A model generated the notes under the pieces. The model saw nothing but the letters and a program-made list of their open reading frames with translations, was not told the DNA's origin and searched no databases. 64,000 nt of DNA, from positions 124,001-188,000 of the IMG/VR virus record IMGVR_UViG_3300043399_000272; one strand, written 5' to 3'. Each line of letters begins with the position of its first letter. The first letter of the stretch is position 1. This document shows, one piece after another, positions 3 through 62,428 of the stretch. A program made the translations under genes and the position numbers.

Positions 3-3000
3 ACTAACAATTACGCAAATGTGCCATTTGCTAAATCAGGAGGAATGATAACAGAAACATTTGGAACAAGTGTTGCGTATATTCCTGACTTTGGATATCT
101 AGTAGGTGATAGTGCTGCTGGAAAAGTTTATGTGTTTGTACAGGCTGATAACGGAAGTTTCTTCTTAAAAGATACTATGTCATATCCTGGTACTACATTT
201 GGCACAGTAATTGCATACAGTGAACAATTGGTTGTAATTACTGCACCGGGTCCAGCCCTAGGGATCAGTCAAATTTATATTTACAGAATACCAACTACCA
301 ACAGTATCAATGGTTTGACACTACAACAAGTAATTACATTTGGTGGCACTATAGGTAAGAGTGTAACTATCTCACAAGATAGTAACTTATTGTATTTAGG
401 AAGTGAAGATAACAACCTAGTTGTAATATTCCAATTAGATCGTGTTCCAACTCACACTGGTTCAGGACTTAGTTTAGCGGCGGCTACTCAGGTCAGAAGC
501 AAACAGTTTATATGTTCCGGTAATGTAGGTAACTTAATAACTGAAGGACAGCGTGTAAGTTTCTCAACAGCTTATACTAATTTAGGAGTAACAACTTATT
601 ACCCTATAACTGAATTCATGAATGAATTTAAAGTCTTGGGTAACCAAACAGGATTATTATCCTATGGTGATCAAGTGACGTTTAATACATCTGGAACCGG
701 TAGCACAATTGCATACACAATTGGTTCTTTCTATGTTGATGAAGGTCTAACATTAAATATCACCGGCGCTGCAGGCAATGGCACCTTTGCTGCGGTATCT
801 TATGCAGCACAAGCAGTTGCACCTTTCCAAATAGGAGAGAAAATTATAATCTCCGGTATGACACCGGCAGCGTACAATGGAACTCATACCGTAGTAGCTT
901 GTACTACAACTCAAGTCACCTTTGCATCAACTGCGACTGGACCAATGACAGTTGCAGGCACGGTGTCAGCACCTACAATAACTGTATTCAGTACTATAGA
1001 AAACTTTGCTACAGGAACTAATATTAATGTAGGTAACCCAATTTACAAGATTACTTTTAGCCAAGATGATGTGCATACTGTTGTAACGAGCACCTATAAT
1101 TCGTCTACAAATAAAACTACTTTCTTGTTGCAAGATGAAATTAGTTATTCTACTCCATCTGGATCTAATATCTTTATAGTGTCAGATGCATTTAGTATTG
1201 GTGGTATACTATCATCAGTATTAGCCGCAGAAGACGACAAGTATGGTTTTAGCCTAACTACCAATTACGATGGTAGTAAATTGTTTGTTGGAGCACCGTA
1301 CACTGATTTTAGCGAAAGTCTAACAGATACAGGTGTCGTGTTCGCATATGACAGATTGATCATAAATGTAGAAGTACAGTATGATCAAAAAGAAGGTCAA
1401 CCATTCGTTATTCGTCCTCCATTCACACCTACAGACCAAACTAGAGTACTGTTAAACGGTGTATTGTTACAGAGTAATCAATATATTGTTATATTTGGTG
1501 TAATATTTATTGATGATATTGGAATGGTTGCAGGAGATATCTTAACAGTTAACAGCATTAATTTTGTGCTAACATCACAATTGTTCAGCCAAGACAATTT
1601 AAGTGATTTGCGTCAAGGTGAGTTGTTCGGGTACAGTCTTTCTTCTAACAAGTATGGTAGTGAGTTATTAGTGGGTGTACCGTTCGATGTGTCGAATAAT
1701 ACACAAAAAGAGGGTTCTGTAATACGTTTTACAAATGCAGGAAAGCGTTTTGGAAGAATACAAGGTGTAATAGAATGCAACCTATATGAACCGACTTACT
1801 TATTACTAAACGGTCAGATTGTTAATGCATTCTCTGAAACACCATTGCTAGCTACTATAAGTACAGGTGCAACAACATGTACTATTAGTGCATTAGCAGC
1901 CTCATACTTACCTAACTCAGGTGTTATCTCGTTTACGAATACGTTAACTGGTAGCATACAGTCAATTGCTTATACTAGTGTAAACGCTACAACAGGTGTA
2001 ATAACATTTGCAGTTCCGCTACCAACTAAGAATGGGTCTTCTCAAACATTTACTGCCGGAACAACTACAGTTACATTGCCATTAGGTAACGCAGCAAATG
2101 TTGCGAATGCAATTAACAATACAAATATTGATAATATCAGAGCATTCTCAACTGAAGATAACAGACTACAAATTTTCTTATTAAAGAACAATTTAGGTCA
2201 ATCTAATAACAAATTGAATTTAGGTGTGTTTAATGGTAACTTCTTAACAATGTTAGGTGTTATAGATTATGTTAAGTCACAGGTCATTCAAGACCCACAT
2301 GCACAGACACATACTCAATTTGGTTATTCTGTAAAATTTAACCAAGAAGACTCGTTTGTTGTAGGAGCTCCATCTAGTGATAGATATAATTCCACTACGT
2401 TCGATGAGCAGTATGAGGACACACATAAAAACACTGTCTTTGATAATGACTTAACTATCTTTGAAGATCGTGCATTTAATGCAGGTAGTGTCTACATGTA
2501 TGATTATATTGTTTCATACGATGAGAGTCTCACCAATATCGGAAATTACATTTATGCACAATCATGCAATTACACAACTAATGATTATGGTTCTTTCCCA
2601 TACTATGGACAAGTTGTAGATTACAATGATGGTGTTGTTATGGTCGGCGCCCCACAGTTTAAACCGGGTGTTGAAAATGGACAAACTTGGATATTCGCTA
2701 ATGACTCTATGGAACCAAATTGGCACCCATATAGAGAAAGCGATCCAATCGTTAACACAGAAAAGATTCAAAAAGCACAACTGTATGACAACGTAACTAA
2801 CGAAACTCTTGTCTCTTTAGATTACATTGATCCGTTACAAGGAAAGTTATTAGGAGTAGTAGGAGAAAACTTAGATTTTGTTTCCACGACTGATCCTGCA
2901 AACTACACAGCGGTTGACATAAACAATGGAAGTGCAACTTGGTCATGGGCACAAGTAGGTAAACTATGGTTTGATACAAGCACTACTAAGTTCTTAAATT

Positions 3001-6000
3001 ACCATCAGAACGATGTTACGTATAATAGTGAATATTGGGGTTCTGTATTCCCTGGTAGTACCGTTACTGTCTACACTTGGATCGAAAGTTTAGTATTACC
3101 GGTATTGTATGAGGGACCGGGGACAGTCTATGATTCTGGTAAGTACTCAACTGTTTATGTAACTGATAGCAATGATAACTTAGTTCCTAAATATTACTTC
3201 TGGGTAAGAGGAACTAACCAGTTATTTACTGCTGCTGGCAAAACATTGACTGACTCTATCATTGAACAGTATATTGCTAATCCTAAGAATTCAGGTATTG
3301 CATTCGTTGCTCCACTAAGACCTAATACATATGCTTTCTATAACTCTAAAGAGTATATTAATAATAAAACTACAAACTTCCACTTAGGATACAGTAGTAG
3401 TGACAACGACAATACAGGTCATCAAGAATTCCAACTAATACGCACAAACTTTACTGATGATTTCTTGTATGGGTTTGTAAACACTAGCAAAGGATATGCT
3501 GTACCCACTAGTTTATATGACAAATATATCGATAGCTTCTCAGGCACAGATGAGATGGGTGCACCTGTTCCCGATATCACTTTACCTAAGTTGATGCAAT
3601 CAGGTGTTAGTGTAAGACCTAGACAAAGTTTTTACTATAATAGGCTATTAGCTCTACAAAATTACTTAGAGTATGCTAACAACGTAGTTAAGCAATATCC
3701 CATAAATGAGATGGGAAATATTACTTTCTTGTATGCACAGGGAGAATTCTATAACACACCTAACTATTGGGAAAATATTTATTGGTGGGCAGAAGGATAT
3801 AGTAATACTACGAAGGCAAGGTTCGAAGTACCGATTTATAGTGATCTATTAACACTAACTCCTACAGAGGGATTAATAGTAGGTGTTGCTCAAAATCCGC
3901 AAGGCAAGAGAGAAGTATATGTATATCGTGAGTCTAAGTGGTCTAGAATCGGTCTTGAAGATGGTACTATACAATTCTTAGATTCTTTGTGGGATTACAG
4001 TAGCAATCAAATTGGGTTTGGTGAGAATTTCTTTGACAACACCCCATATGATTCATATCCTTCAGTTGAAACTCGCTATATCATTCGAGCACTTAACGAA
4101 CAAATTTATGTTGGATCCCTACAACAACATAGAAATAATAGTTTAACCTTAATGTTTGAATATATTCAAAGTGAAAGTGTAGAAAACCAAAACTATTTAC
4201 CATGGCTAACAAAAACCAGCTTTGTTGATGTTCATTATACCGTTAGAGAACTCACTGAAAATGAAAAATTCCAGAGAGATAATCAAACTTTATTAGAAGG
4301 ATACATCAATGAACTTAAGCCGTACAGAGTTGTATTAAAAGATTTCTACTTAAAGTATAGTAAGACTGATTTATACGCAGGAGAGATAACAGACTTCGAT
4401 TTACCTGCAGTTTGGAATGACACTATAGGTAGATTTGTTTCACCACAGTTGACATTTAACCAAGATAACGGTCCTTATAAATTTGGCGTAGAGAATAATA
4501 TTTGGAACGAATATCAGTACAGCGATTGGTTCAATAATTACGGTACTATATTCTCAGAAATTAGTAACACGTTAGTTACCGAATTATCTGAATTTATTAG
4601 TAGCACACAAACTTACTTGTATGTTAAAAACTCTAATAGTTTACCGGTAACTGGTGTTATAAGAATAGGTGAAGAAAAAATTTCTTACGGTGGTATTTCT
4701 CAACTTGAAGGTAAACTAACTGGATTAATAAGAGGGTTTGATGATACAGTGTCCAGCTCACATACTGCTAATGCGTCGGTATATATGGATGTTCCTGCAG
4801 TTGTAGTACTTGATGCTGGTAGAGACTATGCTAGTACACCTAACGTCATTGCTTATGTTGATTTGAGTAAATATCCTCCACCAAAGAGAGAAGCTAGATT
4901 GCAAGCTGTTATGGCAGTAGACAAAGTAGCTTCAATAACTGTTGTAGATCCAGGTGAAGGTTACGTAACTACCCCATCTATTGTTATAGAATCAAGTGTG
5001 GAATATACTTCTACCAAAGACGCTATCAACTTTGTTTCTAATTTGGTTCAAGTAGAAACTACTGATCTTGCTACCGGTGAGTTAGTATATGTTTCTAGCA
5101 GTGCAGATAATGGAAGTAAGAAAATTATACCTGATGGATATTACTATATTAATGTAATTGAAATTTCATTGCTATCAGTAACAGGTACGTCCTTAGTCAG
5201 TTTCTATACCACTTTAGCAGATAGTATTAAGGGTATAAATCGAGTAGACTTTACAAACTCTGAATATATAAGTAATTCCTATACTATCACGGTGGGAATT
5301 CGAGCAAGAGCTAGAGCCACAATGGATAGCTTACAAGTTCGCTCATTAAAGCCAACTCTACGATTCGATAGAACTAGCTATCGTCCTATGATAACTCCAT
5401 GGACACCTAACGAGTATTATTCTAGTCAATATATTAGTTATGGTAATGATGCTAGTTCCCCAATCAAATTGTATGACAGTTTGGTTTATGAAAATGTATC
5501 GGGAACGGTTTCCCCTGCAGGCGGAACAGGTGCTACATTTACTGTATATGTAGTAGTTACTGGTGTCGAGTACAACGTTTCAGTAGAAGACTTGGGACAA
5601 GATTATGATATAGGTGACGTAATCACTATCTTAGGAACTTCTTTGGGCGGAACTACTTCAAATAATTGCATTATTACAGTAGATGCAGTTGACGGTGACG
5701 GTGGTATAACTGATGTAAGTGTATCCGGCACACCATTCATCTCAACTGAAGGGATTTACATTAATCCTAGTTATGCAAGTTTACAAGGTGCATTGTTACC
5801 AGTAACTGATTTGTCTAGTGTTGATGGTTCTGCAGTGGTTACAGTTGATTTAAACTACAGCGGATTAAAGCCAGGCCAAATTAATAATACTTATATGTAT
5901 TTCTTCACTGAGCCAACTGAAGCTAACCAAGGTATTTATGTTTACGATGATAGTTTATCAGGCGGTGCTGTGATTAGAATCAGTCGTCCTAAATTTAACC

Positions 6001-9000
6001 CTTCTGACCTCAGTAATCTATATGAAATATTGATCGAAGATGCTGGCTTAGGATACGCTGAGGGCAATGAAATTAGAATATCCGGAAGTTTATTAGGTGG
6101 ACAGAATGGTATTAACGATGCGATTATTGTTATTACCAAAGTAAACCCTGATACTTCTATTTTCTCAGCAACTATTTCAGGCACTGCGAATGGTGATTTT
6201 GGACGTTATTATGTAAGAGTAAATTCATACGACTCCGCATTGAACCAGTGTGAAATGTCAATATTCTCTGATCAAAATTTACTAATTCCTGTTTCTTATG
6301 CATCATTCATTTGGAACGGAACTAATACAAGTTACGGATACTTACCAGAACAAATAGTAGACAATTACACATTTAATTATAACGTTGGTTCTGTTGTATC
6401 TTATGCGGGATATGTGTGGAAATGTATCAACGCAAATAATGATAGTGAATTCAACGTCAATAACTGGATAATTATATCCAGTGACAATTACATCTTAAAT
6501 GCGCTTGATAGAATTGAAGCATACTATGAGCCTACTATCAATATGCCAGGAAAAGATCCTCAGCAATTGATGAAGGGTATATCATATCCTAATAACACTT
6601 ATCTAGGTAATAAGTTTGCTCCTGAAGATGAAATCCCATTAGATTTCATCTTACGAAATAATACGTTCTACCCTAGAACTATTAACATCAAGGGAGTCGT
6701 ATTCAATGGTAATACTGTTGTTGCAGTCGGTGACTCAACCTCTGGAAGCTCTGTATTAATATACGACAATGAAACGTCCTTGTTCTCTAACTATAATATT
6801 TCTGAAGTATCTTTGGGAATAACAGATTTATCATTCTCTAATGGTAGATATGTGTTGACTACAACAAATCAAAATCAATCAGTGTGGATCAGTGATGATG
6901 CAGTTAACTGGTTCACAGTTGGTACATATAGTCCTTATGATTTTATGGATTATGATGAATTACAATATGATTCTTCTGGTTTGGTCGTAGAAAGTTATCC
7001 TAAGAACGGCGCGCTTGCTGCCGATGAATTCTCACTAGTTACAGGAAATCAATCTATTTCTAAATCTACTGATGAAGTAGTTTGGGAAGAAATATTCAAC
7101 ATTCAATCTAACTTAAATCAGATACTAAAAGATATTATCTATGTAGATATTTCAGCATTCACTGGCTACATGGCATTTGGTGTCGGAGAAGAAGTTACAT
7201 CTGGTGCAGGTACTGCTGCACCAGTGATAAGTAGTTGTTCCTTAATTTACACAAGTGATGACACTACTGTTTGGACAAAGCAAACTCCTACACTAAGTAC
7301 ATTGGGTATTTACGGTGCGGTTGCAACTACCACGTCTGTTATAGTAGTGGGAGAATCAGGGTTAATATACTCAACAACAAATATGTCTACATGGACCGCG
7401 GGAGTAATTTCAGGGTCACCCGTGACTACAAATATAAATTCTGTTGCATTTGGTAACGGTGTCTTTGTTGCAGTAGGAGATAAAACAGGTACAAGTTCTA
7501 CTGATCCTGGATTAATATTACGTTCTACTAACGGCACAACTTGGACACAAGTTTCCAGTGTATTCTTTACGAATAACAACCTAAACAAGGTTACTTATGG
7601 TGAAGATGGATACTTCTATGCTGCAGGTGAAAACGCAACAATACTAAGAAGTTTGAATGGGTCAAATTGGGAAAACATGTCTAATATTCAAGTTGACGAT
7701 CCTTACTATATTGTACAAGGTAATGACTTCTTGTTTGGTTACGGCCCTGAAGAATTAGTCCCTGGAATAGTAACAGACACGTTATCTATGTATGTAAGAA
7801 GTGCACCTGGTGCATATTGGGACTTGGATACCGTCACTACTATAAATCCAGATGTTCCGTATTGGTACAAGCACACTGGATTTAACATGCAGACAGTCGT
7901 TGCTAAACCTGACAATGACAATGTTGTTAGTTTTGCAGGTTTAGTAGTAAACCCAATGACATTGAGCGTATTCGTCATAGATGATGAAACTCAATTAGGT
8001 ACTAGAATTTATACTGACCTAAGTTCTAATACACCGGTCACAACCAGTAGTAATCCTATAGGATACTCTATTGACTGGATAACAGAGACAATTACATTGT
8101 CTGGCGCAATTTCTGCCACTGAATCTATCATGATTGAAGTTTATGAAGTTGGTAATGGTCAAGAACTCGTGAGAGCGAATTCTAAGATTTACCCAATGAA
8201 GACAGATGGAAATGGAAAAACTATTATTGTATTTGAACAGTTGTACCAAGAAATCGTAGCAGATCCTGTAGTATTTGTTAATGGTGTAAAATTTGAATAT
8301 GTTACTACATTTACGGATACAAACCAATTTACTGTAACAAACACATCTGAAAACTTCTTGATGTTGCAGTTTAATACCGCGCTCTCATCAGAAACTGACT
8401 ATGTAGTGTATGCAATATTGGCAACAGGTTCTACTCTCAGAAACCGTAATCAAGTATTAAACTATAGTATTCCAGAAACACAAGTTTATGTACCTACAGG
8501 AACTGAGACAACGATTGATTTAGATTTTGATATATCGATCGGCACCAATGAAGACAATGCAATTGTTGAAGTTAATGGTGAACGCCTAATACCAGTCACT
8601 GAATATTCATTTAACACATCAACTAATCAACTTGTTTTAGTAAATTCAGTCACTAGTGACGATATTGTAGCCATTACTACTTACAATGATACTTCTAGAC
8701 AATGGTTAGTAACTGATACCTACACTGGCATTTCAGTGTACCCTATAAGTTATATAGATACTTCATTGGCTGTAGCGACAATTACATTTGAAACTGATCC
8801 AGCATATAGTTCAGGGACAATGGTGTATATTAATGGCACTAACGGAACTGTAGAACTAAATAGAAACGCTTATTATGTAAAACCAGTTGAAGTGGATAGT
8901 GTCTATTATTATGAAATATACACCGATGCTGATTTATACTATCCAGTTACTGGTCACGATATCGGCACGTATACTGGTGGTGGTGTAGCAAGTGAAAGTA

Positions 9001-9878
9001 CATTCTCAGTACCCTACCCAGATGTTCCGTTCGGAATGGATCCAATGACATATACTGAAGGAAGTAGAACATGGATCACTGTAAATAGCAAGAGAATAGA
9101 CCCTTCACTTGTAATTTTTGGTGAGAATAATCAGTTGAGTATAATCAGTGATATTTCTAGCAGTGACCAGGTAGTAATAACTGCTATGGTTACAGGAGCA
9201 AGTCCAAACCCAATGACGTTTGATATTAACATCAATAAGTATTCAACTCCGGTGGCATATAGAACTAACTTGCAAGATGGTTCTTGGTTAACTGAAGAAT
9301 TTACAGGTGAAACGGATTATATGACGTTCTTTAACGTAAGCAACTTAGTAGAATCTATTTCTAAGACACTAACCGTAATTGCAAATGGTACAGAGTTATA
9401 TACATTATTGCAAGTTAATATCAACCAGATTAAGGAAGTTATTGTATATAATAATACTACTCTTACTACACTAAGCAGTAATGATTTCACTTTGAGCTTG
9501 ATTTCAGGCGCAAGTGGGTTGACATTCACAAACGGTGCAGAAGAAGGTGACTCAATAACAGTAACGTTAATATTGGGAGACACTGTAGAAATTAACGGAG
9601 AGCGTATTAGATTCAGTACAATTTCTATTGAAAATAATACTATTTCTGGATTGACTCGCGGTGTTGACGGAACACTAGTAGCTCCGGTTCATCCTCAATA
9701 TGCTATAGGATATGGTATCAACGATGCAAGAAGATTGACGCCTGAGCAATATAGTGTAGTTTGGGAAAGTACAGATATTGTATCTACTTCATATTATGAC
9801 GAGATTCCTAAAACAGATCCATTACAGATCAGTACAACGGAAATTGCTCAGTTTTTACAAAGTAGCGCATCAAATTGA
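3..9878 (+). CDS. Giant virion structural protein (baseplate/tail-associated), 5'-partial
   Basis: The frame is open to the window edge. It has FG-GAP-like repeats (FGYSL..GS.L.VG.P), Asp-box repeats (RSTNGTTW, RSLNGSNW) and a CBM-like YNVGSVVSYAGYVWKC. It is T/S/N-rich and followed by tail genes. Confidence 0.75.
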   Translation, partial: TNNYANVPFAKSGGMITETFGTSVAYIPDFGYLVGDSAAGKVYVFVQADNGSFFLKDTMSYPGTTFGTVIAYSEQLVVITAPGPALGISQIYIYRIPTTNSINGLTLQQVITFGGTIGKSVTISQDSNLLYLGSEDNNLVVIFQLDRVPTHTGSGLSLAAATQVRSKQFICSGNVGNLITEGQRVSFSTAYTNLGVTTYYPITEFMNEFKVLGNQTGLLSYGDQVTFNTSGTGSTIAYTIGSFYVDEGLTLNITGAAGNGTFAAVSYAAQAVAPFQIGEKIIISGMTPAAYNGTHTVVACTTTQVTFASTATGPMTVAGTVSAPTITVFSTIENFATGTNINVGNPIYKITFSQDDVHTVVTSTYNSSTNKTTFLLQDEISYSTPSGSNIFIVSDAFSIGGILSSVLAAEDDKYGFSLTTNYDGSKLFVGAPYTDFSESLTDTGVVFAYDRLIINVEVQYDQKEGQPFVIRPPFTPTDQTRVLLNGVLLQSNQYIVIFGVIFIDDIGMVAGDILTVNSINFVLTSQLFSQDNLSDLRQGELFGYSLSSNKYGSELLVGVPFDVSNNTQKEGSVIRFTNAGKRFGRIQGVIECNLYEPTYLLLNGQIVNAFSETPLLATISTGATTCTISALAASYLPNSGVISFTNTLTGSIQSIAYTSVNATTGVITFAVPLPTKNGSSQTFTAGTTTVTLPLGNAANVANAINNTNIDNIRAFSTEDNRLQIFLLKNNLGQSNNKLNLGVFNGNFLTMLGVIDYVKSQVIQDPHAQTHTQFGYSVKFNQEDSFVVGAPSSDRYNSTTFDEQYEDTHKNTVFDNDLTIFEDRAFNAGSVYMYDYIVSYDESLTNIGNYIYAQSCNYTTNDYGSFPYYGQVVDYNDGVVMVGAPQFKPGVENGQTWIFANDSMEPNWHPYRESDPIVNTEKIQKAQLYDNVTNETLVSLDYIDPLQGKLLGVVGENLDFVSTTDPANYTAVDINNGSATWSWAQVGKLWFDTSTTKFLNYHQNDVTYNSEYWGSVFPGSTVTVYTWIESLVLPVLYEGPGTVYDSGKYSTVYVTDSNDNLVPKYYFWVRGTNQLFTAAGKTLTDSIIEQYIANPKNSGIAFVAPLRPNTYAFYNSKEYINNKTTNFHLGYSSSDNDNTGHQEFQLIRTNFTDDFLYGFVNTSKGYAVPTSLYDKYIDSFSGTDEMGAPVPDITLPKLMQSGVSVRPRQSFYYNRLLALQNYLEYANNVVKQYPINEMGNITFLYAQGEFYNTPNYWENIYWWAEGYSNTTKARFEVPIYSDLLTLTPTEGLIVGVAQNPQGKREVYVYRESKWSRIGLEDGTIQFLDSLWDYSSNQIGFGENFFDNTPYDSYPSVETRYIIRALNEQIYVGSLQQHRNNSLTLMFEYIQSESVENQNYLPWLTKTSFVDVHYTVRELTENEKFQRDNQTLLEGYINELKPYRVVLKDFYLKYSKTDLYAGEITDFDLPAVWNDTIGRFVSPQLTFNQDNGPYKFGVENNIWNEYQYSDWFNNYGTIFSEISNTLVTELSEFISSTQTYLYVKNSNSLPVTGVIRIGEEKISYGGISQLEGKLTGLIRGFDDTVSSSHTANASVYMDVPAVVVLDAGRDYASTPNVIAYVDLSKYPPPKREARLQAVMAVDKVASITVVDPGEGYVTTPSIVIESSVEYTSTKDAINFVSNLVQVETTDLATGELVYVSSSADNGSKKIIPDGYYYINVIEISLLSVTGTSLVSFYTTLADSIKGINRVDFTNSEYISNSYTITVGIRARARATMDSLQVRSLKPTLRFDRTSYRPMITPWTPNEYYSSQYISYGNDASSPIKLYDSLVYENVSGTVSPAGGTGATFTVYVVVTGVEYNVSVEDLGQDYDIGDVITILGTSLGGTTSNNCIITVDAVDGDGGITDVSVSGTPFISTEGIYINPSYASLQGALLPVTDLSSVDGSAVVTVDLNYSGLKPGQINNTYMYFFTEPTEANQGIYVYDDSLSGGAVIRISRPKFNPSDLSNLYEILIEDAGLGYAEGNEIRISGSLLGGQNGINDAIIVITKVNPDTSIFSATISGTANGDFGRYYVRVNSYDSALNQCEMSIFSDQNLLIPVSYASFIWNGTNTSYGYLPEQIVDNYTFNYNVGSVVSYAGYVWKCINANNDSEFNVNNWIIISSDNYILNALDRIEAYYEPTINMPGKDPQQLMKGISYPNNTYLGNKFAPEDEIPLDFILRNNTFYPRTINIKGVVFNGNTVVAVGDSTSGSSVLIYDNETSLFSNYNISEVSLGITDLSFSNGRYVLTTTNQNQSVWISDDAVNWFTVGTYSPYDFMDYDELQYDSSGLVVESYPKNGALAADEFSLVTGNQSISKSTDEVVWEEIFNIQSNLNQILKDIIYVDISAFTGYMAFGVGEEVTSGAGTAAPVISSCSLIYTSDDTTVWTKQTPTLSTLGIYGAVATTTSVIVVGESGLIYSTTNMSTWTAGVISGSPVTTNINSVAFGNGVFVAVGDKTGTSSTDPGLILRSTNGTTWTQVSSVFFTNNNLNKVTYGEDGYFYAAGENATILRSLNGSNWENMSNIQVDDPYYIVQGNDFLFGYGPEELVPGIVTDTLSMYVRSAPGAYWDLDTVTTINPDVPYWYKHTGFNMQTVVAKPDNDNVVSFAGLVVNPMTLSVFVIDDETQLGTRIYTDLSSNTPVTTSSNPIGYSIDWITETITLSGAISATESIMIEVYEVGNGQELVRANSKIYPMKTDGNGKTIIVFEQLYQEIVADPVVFVNGVKFEYVTTFTDTNQFTVTNTSENFLMLQFNTALSSETDYVVYAILATGSTLRNRNQVLNYSIPETQVYVPTGTETTIDLDFDISIGTNEDNAIVEVNGERLIPVTEYSFNTSTNQLVLVNSVTSDDIVAITTYNDTSRQWLVTDTYTGISVYPISYIDTSLAVATITFETDPAYSSGTMVYINGTNGTVELNRNAYYVKPVEVDSVYYYEIYTDADLYYPVTGHDIGTYTGGGVASESTFSVPYPDVPFGMDPMTYTEGSRTWITVNSKRIDPSLVIFGENNQLSIISDISSSDQVVITAMVTGASPNPMTFDININKYSTPVAYRTNLQDGSWLTEEFTGETDYMTFFNVSNLVESISKTLTVIANGTELYTLLQVNINQIKEVIVYNNTTLTTLSSNDFTLSLISGASGLTFTNGAEEGDSITVTLILGDTVEINGERIRFSTISIENNTISGLTRGVDGTLVAPVHPQYAIGYGINDARRLTPEQYSVVWESTDIVSTSYYDEIPKTDPLQISTTEIAQFLQSSASN

Positions 9879-30130: not shown

Positions 30131-30155
30131 CAACACTCAAAAATAAATATACAAT
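30127..30155 (+). promoter_or_regulatory. sigma70 promoter of the tmRNA
   Basis: TTGACA-17 nt-TACAAT, with TAAATA inside the spacer. Confidence 0.85.
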
Positions 30156-30160
30156 GTGAG

Positions 30161-30476
30161 TTATTGCTGTATGAAGCAAAGAGAAAAGTGTTCTGGACCC
30201 GGGTTCGACTCCCGGCATCTCCACCATAAGCACACTAGTTGGGACAAAACGGTTAGATGTTTCCTCGCAAGACGAACTCTAAGCGCCCATCTAGTTAGTG
30301 TGTTTATGATGGGGATGACTTTGGTTTTCGACAGGGCAAAGAGTAACAGAGTGGACAGCACATCAGCAACGATGTAAAAAGAAGAAAATCTATAACTGCA
30401 AACGCAGCCAATGATGAGGTATTTGCCCTAGCGGCATAATCTCTGGGGGAACTATCCCTTATAACCCAAAATAGTA
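30161..30476 (+). ncRNA. ssrA: Circularly permuted (two-piece) tmRNA
   Basis: The acceptor piece comes first: T-arm CCGGG-TTCGACT-CCCGG and CATCTCC-A-CCA ending at 30226. An intervening segment spans 30227-30310. The coding piece starts GGGGATG at 30311 and pairs with CATCTCC including G3.U70. Tag ORF 30398-30439 reads ANAANDEVFALAA*. Confidence 0.93.
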
Positions 30477-30499
30477 ATAGGGACTCAGTCCCTATTTTT
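30476..30499 (+). terminator. Intrinsic terminator after the tmRNA
   Basis: AATAGGGAC-TCA-GTCCCTATT followed by a T run. Confidence 0.75.
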
Positions 30500-31118
30500 C
30501 TGGATATTGCCAAGTCCAAGACCCGTCCTCTCTATATAATCTCGTTCTGCCCTTAACCTTAGTAGATAATTTAGCGGCACCTTTTCTAGCATTTTCGGCA
30601 GCCTGAGGATTTGAAAGCCCTTTATTCCAACTACTTACTCTTGGATTTTTAATTACAAGTCTCTTGCCAATATTATTTCTAGCAGTATTTCTTGCGGCAC
30701 AAGATTGACTGCAAAAAGGCTTTTCTCGTAACGGATGATGACAAAATTCTAACTTACTAAAAATCTTTGAACACTCTAAACATAAATATTGCCTACTTTC
30801 TTTTGGTTTAGTTTTTGTTCTTTTATTTTGAACAGAAAGTAATTTTGAATGTTCTAACCTTGCTCTTTCGTAATATCTGTTGGTATAGTTCTTTTTTCTA
30901 CCCATTAGATTTACAGCATGCCATTGGGTTCCTCCGTAGATTTTTGCCAAAAGAATGTGTGCTACATAATGTTCTCTGGCTGTTAAATTAACAAGATTAT
31001 CCGGGTCACCAGTCCCGCCCATAGATTTAGGAATAATATGATGGGCTTCTTTGTATCCCTCTAACAATCTTTCTTTTGCTCTTTCTATTAACAAATTATA
31101 GTGTTTGGTGTAGTTCAT
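30492..31118 (-). CDS. HNH homing endonuclease
   Basis: EAHHIIPKSMGG...NLVNLTAREHYVAHILL; C-terminal Zn finger (CLEC..FCSQSC) and NUMOD-like WNKGL. Confidence 0.9.
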   Translation of the reverse strand: MNYTKHYNLLIERAKERLLEGYKEAHHIIPKSMGGTGDPDNLVNLTAREHYVAHILLAKIYGGTQWHAVNLMGRKKNYTNRYYERARLEHSKLLSVQNKRTKTKPKESRQYLCLECSKIFSKLEFCHHPLREKPFCSQSCAARNTARNNIGKRLVIKNPRVSSWNKGLSNPQAAENARKGAAKLSTKVKGRTRLYREDGSWTWQYPEK

Positions 31119-34820: not shown

Positions 34821-34882
34821 ACTTTCGTGATTTATTTGAGTATCTAAAAAGAGAACACTGCCCTACTTGTCAAGGTAAATAA
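34817..34882 (+). CDS. 21-aa CxxC micropeptide
   Basis: MNFRDLFEYLKREHCPTCQGK; GGAG SD; ATGA and TAATG overlaps at both ends. Confidence 0.55.
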   Translation: MNFRDLFEYLKREHCPTCQGK

Positions 34883-35505
34883 TGTTAGAAACTATTTGTG
34901 ATACATTAGTAGAAGCATATAAACGTAATTGGATTACCAGTCGTGATGGCAATGTAAGCATTCGTCACCATGACAGAAATCATTTTTATATTACTCCTAG
35001 CGGCGTGCGTAAGCAAACTCTACAGCCCGATCAATTCAAGAAAATTAGTATTCATGGGTTGCTTTGGCAAGAGGAACATTATACAGACATAAGTGCTAAA
35101 TTAAAACCTAGCGGCGAATTACCACTGCATTTTGGTTTGCAAAGAGCAATGGGGCAACATCGCAATGATGTTAGAGTTGTAGTACATCTACATCCCACAT
35201 ATTGTGTTGCTGCAATGCATAGGGGAATTGAGTTGGGAAATCTTGCAAAAGATTTTCCTGAACTTAGTCGCTATACAAAAGTTGCACCTAACGTAGGAGA
35301 TGTTCCTCCAATTAGTCAAGAACTGGCTGATGCTTGTCATAAGAATTTGGAACTTGATGAATATTCAGGTAACATAAAGTATGATATTGTTGGCATTAAA
35401 GGTCATGGAGTTGTAGCTATTGATACAAGTCCATGGAGAGCGTTTGAGCATATCGAACGACTAGAACACATTTGCCAAATCGTATTGGCGTCCGGAAAAT
35501 ACTAA
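34882..35505 (+). CDS. Class II aldolase/adducin family protein
   Basis: DGNVS, ITPSG, KPSGE..LH, VVHLHP, GHGV. Confidence 0.88.
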   Translation: MLETICDTLVEAYKRNWITSRDGNVSIRHHDRNHFYITPSGVRKQTLQPDQFKKISIHGLLWQEEHYTDISAKLKPSGELPLHFGLQRAMGQHRNDVRVVVHLHPTYCVAAMHRGIELGNLAKDFPELSRYTKVAPNVGDVPPISQELADACHKNLELDEYSGNIKYDIVGIKGHGVVAIDTSPWRAFEHIERLEHICQIVLASGKY

Positions 35506-35514
35506 GGAAATAAA

Positions 35515-35682
35515 ATGCAAGTAAGAGTAGCAGAAGAAGGTAAAAGAATTGGTACGTGTGGTTGCGGTCGTAGCCCCACCGGTGACTGTATCGGTTGGCA
35601 CGGTCTAACAGAAGATCAATTTCAATTAGAATTATCAAAATATAAAGAAACAGTTTTAGAAGAAAAAACAAGAGAGGAATAA
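35515..35682 (+). CDS. CDGSH-type iron-sulfur-like small protein (55 aa)
   Basis: AAGGA SD; CGCGRSPTGDCIGWH approximates the C-x-C-x2-S...C-x-G-x-H ligand set. Confidence 0.65.
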   Translation: MQVRVAEEGKRIGTCGCGRSPTGDCIGWHGLTEDQFQLELSKYKETVLEEKTREE

Positions 35683-35684
35683 TT

Positions 35685-36203
35685 ATGACACAATGGGTAG
35701 ACGCATTAAAAGAACAAAGTATCCCTGATTATGCAAAGGATACAAAGTTAAATATGGACGCAGTTATCAAGCGTTCAGCACTTCCCGTAGAAGAGGCAGA
35801 AGCGGTTGCATTAGCAGCAGCATTTGCAACAGGCAATAGCAAACTATGGACTTGGATGGAAAGTCAGATTGCTAACAAGACTGAGACACATGCAGCACTT
35901 ACAGCGGCAGCATTGATGGCACAAAACAACGTTTGGTATCCGTTTGTTGAAATGGCTGATGACGAAAATCTAAAAGGTCTTCCTGCTCAATTACGTATGA
36001 ATGCTATTAGTACAAGCGGTGGTACAACTAAAGAACGTTTTGAAGCATATAGCTTGGCAGCAAGTATTGTTGGTAAGTGCCACTTCTGTGTAAAAGCACA
36101 TTATGAAGGACTAAAGAAAATGGGCTATACAGTAGAACAACTACGTGATATAGGTCGCATTGCAAGTGTCATTAACTCAGTATCTAAAGTAGTAGCAAAC
36201 TAA
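35685..36203 (+). CDS. ahpD: Alkylhydroperoxidase AhpD (CMD family)
   Basis: IPDYAKD.KLN, MAQNNVWY, FE...LAAS...KCHFCV..H. Confidence 0.92.
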   Translation: MTQWVDALKEQSIPDYAKDTKLNMDAVIKRSALPVEEAEAVALAAAFATGNSKLWTWMESQIANKTETHAALTAAALMAQNNVWYPFVEMADDENLKGLPAQLRMNAISTSGGTTKERFEAYSLAASIVGKCHFCVKAHYEGLKKMGYTVEQLRDIGRIASVINSVSKVVAN

Positions 36204-36204
36204 T

Positions 36205-36612
36205 ATGGCAAGTCTAGCTGAATATTTTGAGAAGAACCGTCCTCAACCTTATTTTGAGTTCGGTACACGTGTGTTCGGTAAATGGAATAAGATTCCTTTT
36301 GTTGGCACAGTATACGGGGATGGTATGATCAATGAAGAAGACGGCCCACGCCTAACAATTCATCTAGACTTGCCCATTAAAGTTGATAACACAGTTAAAA
36401 CAATTATAATTGATACGTATGACAAATTTAAGGGTCTAGTAGAATTATCAGACCCGGATGCGCCCGTAGCTGATCGGAAAGCAAGAGCCTCTAAAACTCA
36501 AGGTAGTGGGTTCGACTCCCACCGAGCGCACCAAACAAAACCTAAAGCTAAGGAGAAATCTAAGTCAACTTCTCTATTAGAGAATTTGAAAAAGCTCAGG
36601 GAAAAGAAATAA
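36205..36612 (+). CDS. Hypothetical protein whose C-terminal part overlaps a tRNA gene
   Basis: Globular N-terminus (GTRVFGKWNKIPFVG..IHLDLP); the tail DAPVADRK...HRAHQ is encoded by the tRNA sequence. Confidence 0.65.
   Translation: MASLAEYFEKNRPQPYFEFGTRVFGKWNKIPFVGTVYGDGMINEEDGPRLTIHLDLPIKVDNTVKTIIIDTYDKFKGLVELSDPDAPVADRKARASKTQGSGFDSHRAHQTKPKAKEKSKSTSLLENLKKLREKK
36460..36533 (+). tRNA. tRNA with CUA anticodon (amber suppressor type), imperfect stems, nested in a CDS
   Basis: Acceptor GCGCCCG/CGAGCGC (6/7 pairs) plus A-CCA; T8A9; D-stem GCT/AGC with GG; anticodon loop CT-CTA-AA (CTA at 36491-36493) on AGAGC/ACTCA (3/5 pairs); perfect T-arm GTGGG-TTCGACT-CCCAC. Confidence 0.8.
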
Positions 36613-36620
36613 ATATCTGT

Positions 36621-36773
36621 ATGATTAAGTTACCTTTTATAGGATTAATGGGAGTAGGAAGCGATAACATGCTTTATACTCCTAATGGCGAAGCTCTATT
36701 CAGAGCGCCCGAATGGGCAGCGTGGCGCATCCAGCGCATTCAACATTGGATTGCACAAAAAACTTGGAGATAA
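36621..36773 (+). CDS. 50-aa hypothetical protein
   Basis: ATG 5 nt after TAAATA; MIKLPFIGLMGVG...QKTWR. Confidence 0.55.
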   Translation: MIKLPFIGLMGVGSDNMLYTPNGEALFRAPEWAAWRIQRIQHWIAQKTWR

Positions 36774-36775
36774 AA

Positions 36776-37378
36776 ATGGCATAGATTGAATTTGATTGTA
36801 AAGACATAGTGTTTCACTTCAACAAGAAACACCTAGAAGATCAGACCATTCCCATGTGGGTCTTAAAATTTCATGGTGAAACATATTATGTGAATCATGT
36901 GGAATGCAATGTTCCATGGTCTACTAAAGAGACTCCTGACAATTCACATACTAAAGGCTCTATTAAAGTCAGAGACTGTTTGTTACAGATTGCCGATAAC
37001 AACGAAGCCAAAATATCACCCATCACAGAAATTGACAAAGCACGAATCCGTAATACCAAAAAAGGTATCACCCGCGTTACAGTTAGTGAGCGTAACTGGG
37101 GAGGACAAAAGTTGCGTAAGTTGTTACGAGAAAAGAAAATCAAGCATGGCCCTATCAAAACTATAGGTGGCGCATGTACAACATCTTTCCATATCACTGA
37201 TATTTTTAACGAACAGGATGTAACTTATCTTGCGTTAATGTTGTCTGATACTGACTTTAGAAAACTCATGCCTAATGAAGGATACTACAGGATGTACGAT
37301 GACCCAAAGTATCAAGGGACCGGCGATATCGATTTGGATGCTGAGGACTGGTCCGATGATGACGAGAACGACCAATAA
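36776..37378 (+). CDS. Hypothetical protein with in-frame TAG at codon 3 (MA*IEFDCKDIVFHFNKK...)
   Basis: GGAGA SD plus ATG at 36776, in frame with the ORF called from GTG 36809; TAG at 36782-36784. Confidence 0.65.
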
Positions 37379-62173: not shown

Positions 62174-62428
62174 ATGACATTACCGGACGAACGCTACCGT
62201 GCCCTTAAGCAAGGTAAAAAATTATTAGAGGAGTTATGTGACCCCGGTCGCACCCCTCGTGTCCCTAGTATTATCAGAGATAAAGCAAGAGGTGCATTGC
62301 GCCATTTCCCACAAGATTGGGAAATCGATGCGTTAGCAGATAAATGCCCAGATATGCTTGATAAAGTATCATTTACTGATAAACTATTACAAAAACAACT
62401 TGGAGATAAAATTGGCAAAACCATTTGA
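62174..62428 (+). CDS. Hypothetical protein (BPSL0761-like)
   Basis: MTLPDER.RA......L..L...TPRVP..IR..A...LRHFP. Confidence 0.65.
   Translation: MTLPDERYRALKQGKKLLEELCDPGRTPRVPSIIRDKARGALRHFPQDWEIDALADKCPDMLDKVSFTDKLLQKQLGDKIGKTI

Follow-up and report, generated by a model that had tools for sequence, protein, structure and literature searches.

The window analyzed here, a stretch of 64,000 nt (positions 124,001 to 188,000 of the virus record IMGVR_UViG_3300043399_000272), carries on its + strand a tRNA gene with anticodon CUA (36460-36533), followed about 240 nt downstream by an SD, an ATG and an in-frame TAG that precede a long coding sequence ending at 37378. ARAGORN identified the tRNA as a 74-nt molecule with anticodon CTA, and the Rfam tRNA model (RF00005) scored it at 54.3 bits against a gathering score of 29. 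It has the anticodon loop CUCUAAA, the acceptor pairs G1-C72, C2-G71 and G3-C70, A73, and an encoded CCA. Upstream, an ORF spanning positions 36205-36612 (+) encodes a conserved small protein of about 85 aa (36205-36459) and, given that it has no stop codon until 36612, runs through the tRNA gene. Residues 1-80 of this ORF have homologs of 80-110 aa next to the tRNA or the downstream gene in about 30 loci; in several of them the ORF also reads through the tRNA, and in others the tRNA comes before it. A consensus scan revealed a sigma-70-type promoter-like site (TTGATA, 16 nt, TATAAT; 11 of 12 matches) at 36383-36410 (+), about 50 nt upstream of the tRNA. Since no terminator-like site was found on the + strand between this site and the end of the downstream gene, co-transcription of the tRNA and the gene is plausible, although this is only inferred. 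Between them lies a 50-aa ORF (36621-36773, +), whose TAA (36771-36773) directly follows the SD of the downstream gene. This ORF is conserved in close relatives: it aligns almost identically in the related locus L003, the same C-terminal QKTWR is seen in locus L023, and similar contexts occur in loci L024, L029 and L050.

The start of the downstream gene consists of the SD GGAGA (36766-36770), with GGAG ending 6 nt before the ATG, the leader ATG GCA (36776-36781), and the TAG (36782-36784), after which ATT GAA TTT GAT TGT continues in frame with the 189-aa ORF listed from GTG 36809 to TAA 37376-37378. No SD-like motif precedes GTG 36809. The first-pass annotation had noted that this start context matches that of uvsX except for the first base of the start codon, and this was confirmed: the 15-mer AACTTGGAGATAAAA occurs exactly twice in the window, at 36761 and at 62397, the second copy sits before a TTG-GCA start of a UvsX-like recombinase, and the two 21-mers match at 20 of 21 positions. 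The body of the gene (36785-37378, +) comprises 197 codons plus TAA. A database search retrieved 1487 homologs of its product, but no Pfam, PHROG, NCBIfam or PADLOC family matched, and a sequence profile search against the PDB gave nothing significant. The product has an N-terminal beta domain with a possible WW-like core, a C-terminal domain that may be ACT-like, and an acidic tail; in the AlphaFold model (pLDDT 82.8), residues 2-13 form the first beta strand, with a pLDDT of about 91. The N-domain contains the motif P-M-W...G-E-T-Y-Y-V-N-H...P-W and its profile also retrieves WW-repeat proteins, but the protein itself does not reach the Pfam threshold for WW (PF00397). The C-domain model (pLDDT 84) resembles the ACT domains of IlvN, AcuB, TyrA and Rel at TM 0.45-0.6, with a best E-value of only 8e-3 and no sequence match. 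Foldseek searches with the whole model gave only weak hits to generic ferredoxin-like folds, including translation factors, on which we do not rely.

To determine whether the in-frame TAG is conserved, we compared homologous loci retrieved by the protein alone (gene-first loci). In 60 of 62 of them, an SD, an ATG and 1-8 codons followed by TAG lie just before the conserved I-E-[YF]-A-C-K-D, and the TAG is likewise present in 88 of 93 distinct variants (45-100% protein identity), from independent assemblies. The leaders are M plus 0-8 variable residues, most often MA (23), MS (16) and MK (12), and 84 of 87 scored leaders are preceded by an AAGGAG, AAGGA, GGAG, AGGAG or AGGA motif, 72 of which lie 6-8 nt before the ATG. 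The codon following the TAG is ATT, ATA, ATC, AAC or AAA in all 88 variants. TAA or TGA never replaces the TAG in this family, even though stop usage in the same DNA is TAA 556, TGA 279 and TAG 39. The homologs therefore do not reveal a sense residue at position 3, as the first-pass annotation had hoped to learn from them; database proteins reading MAQIEF are code-15-style translations of this TAG and not evidence of a Gln codon.

The sequence immediately after the TAG behaves as coding sequence. Codons 3-8 vary synonymously (TAT/TAC, GCT/GCA/GCG/GCC, TGT/TGC, AAG/AAA, GAT/GAC) while the residues stay fixed, and TAG-less variants start M-I-E-L-E-C, M-E-M-V-C-K and M-T-T-E-I-A-C-K at the same place. 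RNAalifold on 14 diverse loci predicted no conserved pairs around the TAG, indicating that read-through is not of the structure-stimulated kind.

We next examined the linkage between the TAG and the tRNA. A tRNA(CUA) is present in 82 of the 88 TAG-bearing loci, always on the same strand and upstream in 79, at a median distance of 316 nt. In the unbiased gene-first set it lies within 6 kb in about 55 of 60; of the five exceptions, no tRNA(CUA) was found within 6 kb in L014, L033, L047 and L053, and that of L017 lies about 8 kb away, although the rest of those genomes could not be read. In the reverse test, using 99 loci fetched by a tRNA pattern, the arrangement SD-ATG-(1-10 codons)-stop followed by an ORF of at least 60 occurred on the strand of the tRNA 68 times with TAG, 3 times with TAA and 2 times with TGA, in contrast with 5, 3 and 8 on the opposite strand. 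The base after the TAG was A in 60 cases, G in 7 and C in 1.

The tRNA itself is under constraint. In an alignment of 42 family members, 12 of 15 consensus pairs show compensatory double changes, and among 121 distinct sequences the anticodon loop is CUCUAAA or UUCUAAA in 119, all encode CCA, and G1-C72 is present in 111. We considered the possibility that it is an initiator tRNA reading UAG, but this was rejected because 1-72 is paired and the anticodon stem (A.A, G-C, A-U, G-C, C.A in the window) lacks the GC run. The first-pass annotation had proposed that three stem mismatches make this suppressor probably weak, which is not upheld: C31.A39 and a mismatch at 27-43 are recurrent features of the family, and unpaired ends of the anticodon stem have been reported to raise suppression (PMC13092985). 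The C5.A68 mismatch in the acceptor stem recurs in one other aligned tRNA (two C.A cases at that pair). Comparison with paralogs did not reveal the origin of the tRNA, since no consistent nearest isotype emerged within phage tRNA arrays and only the version from RHph_I1_18 resembles phage tRNA-Lys. This resemblance, together with A73 and U35, makes Lys or Gln plausible as the inserted amino acid.

To establish whether this TAG is part of a wider recoding, we analyzed stop codons across the window and in the loci of relatives. Of 71 greedily chosen ORFs in the window, 43 end in TAA, 25 in TGA and 3 in TAG; the only well-supported TAG-terminated gene is an HNH homing endonuclease, and none of about 66 + strand genes ends in TAG. 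No + strand gene is split by a TAG, and 36776 is the only SD-ATG-x-TAG followed by a long ORF that is not buried inside another gene. Among 900 ORFs of at least 100 codons in the window plus the relatives' loci, the frame continues far past a TAG in only one case, in locus L032, which turned out to be two adjacent genes in the same frame. TAG ends 39 of 874 ORFs in related loci (about 4%), with short tails after it. From these results, in the DNA examined, which includes only 64 of the 260 kb of this genome, these phages are not recoded.

A second family shows the same arrangement. About 18 of 27 loci encoding PTH2-like peptidyl-tRNA hydrolases (PF01981) have an N-terminal TAG placed in the same way, and 21 of 27 have a tRNA(CUA) within 6 kb. 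This family is different from that of the window protein and includes genes of the cultured phages Acinetobacter ME3, Serratia BF and Sinorhizobium Phosso, in which they are unannotated or annotated truncated. The PTH2 gene of Phosso begins ATG AAG TAT TAG, with a tRNA(CUA) 4.5 kb upstream, whereas its ortholog in Atu_ph07 begins ATG...TTT TGA, and the only reported suppressor of that phage has anticodon UCA. This anticodon is taken from the published description, since the syntenic region of Atu_ph07 contains no tRNA. The pieces after the stop extend the Pfam PTH2 match from profile position 13 to 3 and raise the score from 59 to 74 bits. Several PTH2-like genes next to a tRNA(CUA) are not gated, so the tRNA has some role beyond opening this lock. 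No gene gated by TAA, TGA or TAG was found within 3 kb of the tRNA(UUA) of phiN3.

Taken together, these observations support the idea, put forward in the first-pass annotation, that this gene starts at ATG 36776 and needs the adjacent phage tRNA to pass an in-frame TAG in a phage that otherwise uses code 11. We consider it likely that, after Met-Ala, the ribosome meets UAG and continues only when the tRNA(CUA), probably encoded on the same transcript, inserts an amino acid in competition with host release factor 1 (RF1). Because the evidence is entirely comparative, the expression, charging and decoding activity of the tRNA are inferred. Failure would cost only a dipeptide, and the output of the 199-residue protein would therefore follow the ratio of charged suppressor to RF1, an AND gate of mRNA and tRNA. 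The pair is conserved in well over a hundred phage lineages, some of them cultured, so it looks like a natural translational lock and key rather than an accident. It is also inferred that its purpose is to scale or time the production of translation-associated accessory proteins to suppressor activity; the link to PTH2 and to a nearby tmRNA suggests factors that handle by-products of suppression, such as dropped-off peptidyl-tRNA or read-through ribosomes, although this remains conjecture given that the function of the window protein is unknown.

Among the alternatives, all of which we regard as unlikely, one is that ribosomes translate Met-Ala, terminate at UAG and re-initiate at the adjacent AUU or nearby, the dipeptide ORF acting as a regulatory upstream ORF and the tRNA having another job or only modulating the process. 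The codon after the TAG is ATT in 78 of 88 variants, ATT and GAA at this place are more fixed than synonymous sites elsewhere (ATT in 75 of 79 Ile, GAA in 72 of 77 Glu), and AUU is a known weak bacterial start codon, for example in infC; the ungated PTH2-like genes beside a tRNA(CUA) also fit this view. The fixation could also reflect a suppression context. However, re-initiation gives no reason for the stop to be TAG in 88 of 88 cases, nor for a tRNA(CUA) on the same strand in 82 of 88. In addition, the next codon in other gated genes is AAC, AAA, AAT, ACN, GAA or GTN, none of them start codons, and Atu_ph07 pairs a TGA gate with a UCA suppressor.

A comparably unlikely alternative retains the decoding mechanism but not its purpose: the lock would privatize or protect the payload gene, silent wherever the tRNA is absent (for example, after transfer to another genome or when taken by a competing element), or would tie the tRNA and the gene together as a selfish linked pair. 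The tight same-strand linkage with variable spacing and the agreement of lock codon and anticodon in Phosso and Atu_ph07 are in line with this possibility, and Borges et al. (10.1101/2021.08.26.457843) discuss codes as a means of sensing or excluding co-infecting phages. Sequence data alone do not distinguish it from the dosage or timing reading, but a single mutation from TAG to a sense codon would free the gene, and a few lineages have done so.

An incipient or relict state of genome-wide recoding, as the first-pass annotation also suggested, is improbable. TAG is a rare stop here, and Borges et al. propose loss of a stop codon followed by gain of a suppressor as the path to recoding. Nevertheless, the one-codon state sits at the same N-terminal position in lineages that share only 45-50% protein identity, and in a second family, which points to stable selection and not transit, and no other in-frame TAG was found in the window plus about 700 kb of relatives' DNA, although only a quarter of this genome was visible. 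Even less likely is a start downstream, at GTG 36809 or at ATG 36854, where the database gene call begins (MWVLKF). Standard gene callers chose these starts and many database homologs are called from V/MFHFNK, but the eight codons between the TAG and 36809 are conserved as protein, the codon aligned with GTG 36809 is GTC, GTT or GTA in 24 of 79 variants, and starting there would remove most of the first beta strand. Finally, although a single T at 36782 makes the stop, an assembly or sequencing error or a recent nonsense mutation is refuted by the same TAG in 88 distinct sequences from many samples and assemblers and in the isolate RHph_I1_18, by analogy in ME3, BF and Phosso, and by the intact downstream frame under purifying selection.

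Six literature searches found no description of a single-gene N-terminal amber gate. More broadly, and more likely than not, large phages carry a previously unrecognized regulatory cassette formed by a dedicated suppressor tRNA and one or a few client genes locked by the matching stop codon within the first ten codons (UAG with CUA; UGA with UCA in Atu_ph07), the clients being translation-associated proteins, namely PTH2-like hydrolases and a WW/ACT-like protein. If so, this would be the missing target of the suppressor tRNAs of normal-code phages, and a plausible, stable one-codon state from which genome-wide recoding could grow. The association of suppressor tRNAs with peptidyl-tRNA hydrolases and tmRNA hints at a coordinated toolkit for manipulating or repairing translation termination during infection. 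These data also expose a systematic annotation error, since the genes are missing or truncated in GenBank records of cultured phages and appear in metagenome protein sets with a spurious Q.

In phages with suppressor-based recoding (code 15, TAG to Gln; crAss-like, Lak and other gut phages), a phage-encoded tRNA(CUA) also reads UAG on a standard-code host and TAG is depleted as a stop in a low-GC genome; however, tens to hundreds of their genes carry many internal TAGs and coding density collapses under code 11, whereas here there is one TAG, always in the first 10 codons of one particular gene beside the tRNA. The same kind of tRNA occurs as an orphan in the normal-code phages XacN1, Summit, Eneladusvirus and ME3, and the tRNA-Sup of XacN1 is the closest DNA match to the tRNA of the window. 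The authors of the XacN1 study tried reading through the 18 amber stop codons of their annotated genes and found no added similarity and no targets (PMC5852040), and no targets were found for Summit; here the target is a TAG at the start of a gene, and no homolog of the gated family was found beside the tRNA-Sup pair of XacN1. In prfB (RF2), with its early in-frame UGA, and in infC, with its AUU start, an early in-frame signal likewise makes synthesis depend on the activity of the machinery that decodes it and failure costs a short peptide, but prfB is passed by a +1 frameshift and senses its own product, while here the frame is unchanged, the decoder is a separate tRNA gene, and no feedback from the protein to decoding has been shown. 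In the programmed read-through of Qbeta A1 and MuLV gag-pol, a viral stop codon is also read as sense to make the functional protein; those systems use host near-cognate tRNAs, run at a low fixed rate, yield two functional products and often need a downstream RNA structure, in contrast with the dedicated cognate tRNA, the dipeptide product and the absence of conserved structure observed here. The same logic underlies engineered amber-suppressor gates, such as the supD tRNA combined with an amber-containing T7 RNA polymerase gene, or the suppressor-tRNA feed-forward "leak dampener" (PMC7969014), in which output needs both the mRNA and the suppressor tRNA. Those designs, reached independently, are synthetic, and the arrangement described here would be a natural, widespread counterpart with the amber codon placed right after the start codon.

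To confirm the presence of the suppressor tRNA, we examined the region with ARAGORN, which finds a 74-nt tRNA with anticodon CTA at 36460-36533 on the + strand; Rfam's tRNA model scores it 54.3 bits against a gathering score of 29. Downstream, the sequence reads GGAGA (36766-36770), then 5 nt, then ATG GCA TAG ATT GAA TTT GAT TGT from 36776, in frame with the ORF that a mechanical ORF finder starts at GTG 36809 and ends at TAA 37376-37378. The 15-mer AACTTGGAGATAAAA occurs exactly twice in the window, here and at 62397, where it precedes a TTG-GCA start of a UvsX-like recombinase. As noted in the first-pass annotation, the translation-initiation contexts of the gated gene (36761-36781) and of uvsX (62397-62417) match at 20 of 21 positions. 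The uvsX gene appears to start at TTG 62412.

The window otherwise reads as standard code. The 71 ORFs selected greedily end in TAA (43), TGA (25) or TAG (3), no + strand gene is interrupted by a TAG, and 36776 is the only SD-ATG-x-TAG followed by a long ORF that is not inside another gene. Of the three TAG-terminated ORFs, only an HNH homing endonuclease on the minus strand (30495-31118; phrog_655, E=2e-43) has family support; a suppressor would extend it by about 10 codons. This gene overlaps the 3' end of a phage-encoded permuted (two-piece) tmRNA (30134-30530, + strand) with the tag ANAANDEVFALAA, which matches Rfam tmRNA_permuted and beta_tmRNA. The tmRNA is located 6 kb upstream of the module, and similar tmRNAs lie within a few kb of the tRNA(CUA)/gated gene in many related loci. 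Just upstream of the module (34882-36203, + strand), we observed a class II aldolase-like gene and a carboxymuconolactone-decarboxylase (AhpD-like) family gene, which are auxiliary metabolic-type genes in a T4-like phage. A single + strand ORF of 3285 codons (21-9878) runs off the left edge of the window.

To determine what homologs carry at the position of the stop, we searched with the piece after it (window positions 36785-37375) and never with a read-through protein. This piece has 1487 relatives in the protein collection. The full-length relatives begin M-A/S/K-Q-I-E-F/Y-x-C-K-D, which looks as if a Gln codon had mutated in the window; however, this is not the case, since the DNA of three such proteins reads ATG GCA TAG ATT or ATG TCA AAC TAG ATT. 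The Q is therefore the TAG translated under a TAG=Gln table, as in TAG=Gln-style gene calls on short contigs, and for the same reason many other homologs were called short, from V/MFHFNK or MWVLKF. Both kinds of gene call mislead homology-based annotation. When 62 loci were fetched from IMG/VR by the protein alone, 60 of them showed SD-ATG-(1 to 8 codons)-TAG directly before the conserved N-terminus, although their proteins are only 49-100% identical to that of the window. Over all fetched DNA there are 93 distinct variants, of which 88 carry the TAG. The leaders are short and variable (MA, MS, MK, MSQQ, MTQQ, MSK and others), and the codon after TAG is ATT, ATA, ATC, AAC or AAA, so that A follows in all 88. 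An AAGGAG-type motif was present in 84 of 87 scored leaders, and 72 of those 84 motifs lie 6-8 nt before the leader ATG. None of the gates is TAA or TGA, whereas in the same DNA the stops of ORFs of at least 100 codons are TAA 556, TGA 279 and TAG 39.

Comparison of these sequences indicates that the residues after the TAG are translated. Codons 3-8 after the TAG vary synonymously while the amino acids stay fixed, and the codon aligned with GTG 36809 of the window is GTC, GTT or GTA in 24 of 79 variants, so it is not a conserved start. An AlphaFold model built on 48 sequences (pLDDT 82.8) puts residues 2-13, directly after the TAG, into the first beta strand with a confidence of about 91. In addition, the few TAG-less relatives start with ATG at the same place (M-T-T-E-I-A-C-K, M-E-M-V-C-K and M-I-E-L-E-C).

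We next evaluated whether the tRNA goes with the gate. In 82 of the 88 TAG-bearing variants a tRNA(CUA) lies in the fetched stretch, always on the same strand, upstream in 79, and at a median distance of 316 nt. In the unbiased gene-first set, about 55 of 60 loci have it within 6 kb; two that ARAGORN missed (loci L003 and L004) carry it about 180 nt upstream, one (locus L017, seen in locus L122) has it about 8 kb away, and for four loci the fetched DNA holds none. In the reverse test, the pattern SD-ATG-(1-10 codons)-stop-ORF>=60 occurs on the tRNA's strand 68 times with TAG (in 61 loci), 3 times with TAA and 2 times with TGA, whereas the counts on the other strand are 5, 3 and 8, respectively. 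Some phages carry two tRNA(CUA) genes in tandem (loci L059/L060, 5322-5477; XacN1, locus L189, 6000-6158; and loci L089, L091, L112, L124 and L162), and in L059/L060 these sit directly upstream of a TAG-less member of the window's family.

The first-pass annotation had considered the suppressor probably weak because of three stem mismatches, but the tRNA is a real, constrained tRNA and is not visibly weak. Forty-two family members give a consensus in which 12 of 15 pairs show compensatory double changes. Among 121 distinct sequences, the loop is CUCUAAA or UUCUAAA in 119, G1-C72/C2-G71/G3-C70 is kept in 111, A73 in 113, and CCA is always encoded. Pair 31-39 is C.A or A.C in 73, and 27-43 is mismatched in about a third; two of the three mismatches are therefore family traits, and the third (C5.A68) recurs in one other aligned tRNA, with two C.A cases at that pair. 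It has been reported that unpairing the top of the anticodon stem raised UAG read-through in E. coli (PMC13092985). With respect to the amino acid carried, the paralog comparison gave no consistent answer; the version from Rhizobium phage RHph_I1_18 is most like phage tRNA-Lys. No conserved RNA structure surrounds the gate. A near-consensus sigma-70-type promoter lies about 50 nt upstream of the tRNA and no + strand terminator was found before the end of the gene, so co-transcription is plausible. The ORF of a conserved protein of about 85 aa (36205-36612, + strand) has no stop before 36612 and reads straight through the tRNA gene, as happens in several relatives, while in others the tRNA precedes this small gene; if the tRNA is cut out of the transcript, this mRNA would lose its stop codon.

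As judged from the window and the fetched DNA, these phages are not recoded, since after TAG-terminated ORFs the frame runs on for only 0-24 codons. The single exception (locus L032, 10112-11923, + strand) is two adjacent genes in the same frame, in which a TAG-terminated gene is followed two codons later by the ATG of the next gene; an active suppressor would fuse the two proteins.

In tRNA(CUA) loci without the window's family, we found the same lock on PTH2-like peptidyl-tRNA hydrolases. One of them is a clear Pfam and NCBIfam PTH2, and others are distant, with sub-threshold hits and a shared motif. A gene-first scan with this family gave 27 loci, of which about 18 are gated by TAG and 21 have a tRNA(CUA) within 6 kb, including 6 of the 9 ungated ones. 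In locus L092, one operon reads tRNA(CUA), then a TAG-gated PTH2-like gene, then an ungated member of the window's family. In locus L112 (2864-3795, + strand), two consecutive TAG-gated genes lie downstream of two tRNA(CUA) copies: a PTH2-like protein (ATG AAG AAG TAG), immediately followed by a 198-aa protein (ATG ACG TAG) with an H...HD...GK motif suggesting an HD-type phosphohydrolase, for which there was no Pfam hit.

Cultured phages show the same arrangement. RHph_I1_18 has an unannotated ATG AGT GAG TTC ATG TAG AAC... encoding only the N-domain of the window's family, and its annotated tRNA(cta) follows 12 nt later. Acinetobacter phage ME3 has a tRNA with anticodon CTA, then ATG ACT TAG ATT..., with the CDS annotated from a later codon. 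Serratia phage BF has ATG ACG CAC TAG AAT... in an unannotated gap and a tRNA(CUA) 3.3 kb away; its Erwinia and Yersinia relatives hold the same unannotated gene and annotate a tRNA-Pyl or tRNA-Sup-CTA. In total, the stop-gated genes are unannotated or start too late in the GenBank records of five cultured phages (KU935715, ME3_195; KY630187, gap between BF_0404 and BF_0405; MF403008, AUZ95035; PV764938, XYS97424; MN988519, gap before EVB91_023).

To assess whether the lock matches the key, we compared Sinorhizobium phage Phosso and Agrobacterium phage Atu_ph07, which have orthologous PTH2 genes in the same neighbourhood, near an RNA ligase. The Phosso gene reads AGGAG-N8-ATG AAG TAT TAG GTT..., and a tRNA(CUA), annotated as tRNA-Undet(nnn), is located 4.5 kb upstream on the same strand. 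In contrast, the Atu_ph07 gene reads ATG ATT GGC GAA CAC TTT TGA ATT..., and its genome paper reports a single suppressor tRNA, with anticodon UCA (PMC6102473). This correspondence rests on one pair of genomes and, for the UCA tRNA, which we did not locate ourselves, on the published report. In both phages, the piece after the stop extends the Pfam PTH2 match from profile position 13 to position 3 and raises the score; the annotated starts therefore cut into the domain. The suppressor/PTH2 neighbourhood in these jumbo phages (Phosso, locus L221, 27469-33143; Atu_ph07, locus L063, 1-266) also holds a T4-like RNA ligase, cysteinyl-tRNA synthetase, a seryl-tRNA-synthetase-like gene and phosphatases, and reads as a translation and tRNA-repair island.

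The gated protein of the window matched no known family. Its N-domain occurs alone, with the C-domain, or at the C-terminus of other proteins. The core of the N-domain (P-M-W...G-E-T-Y-Y-V-N-H...P-W) looks WW-like, and the profile retrieves WW-repeat proteins, whereas the C-domain model resembles ACT domains, though weakly. In Atu_ph07 and Phosso, the N-domain gene sits two genes after the PTH2 gene.

From these comparisons, and in the absence of experimental evidence, the best-supported mechanism is a translational gate, in which initiation occurs at the leader ATG and UAG is decoded by the phage's own tRNA(CUA) in competition with RF1. The purine after UAG fits the classical context rule for efficient amber suppression in E. 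coli (Bossi; Miller and Albertini), and an early stop makes failure cheap. The reason for the gate is inferred: the association with PTH2 and tmRNA suggests that accessory factors for the side effects of suppression are produced in proportion to suppressor activity, although a timing role or a "private key" role is equally open. Re-initiation at AUU explains the fixed ATT; however, it does not explain the TAG specificity, the tRNA linkage, the non-start codons after other gates, or the TGA/UCA case. In the full-text literature searched we found no description of a dedicated N-terminal stop-codon gate paired with a suppressor tRNA, which is not proof that none exists. Genome-wide recoding with suppressor tRNAs is already known, as are orphan suppressor tRNAs without targets; the arrangement proposed here differs from these in that the suppressor tRNA is paired with a dedicated stop-codon gate at the N-terminus.
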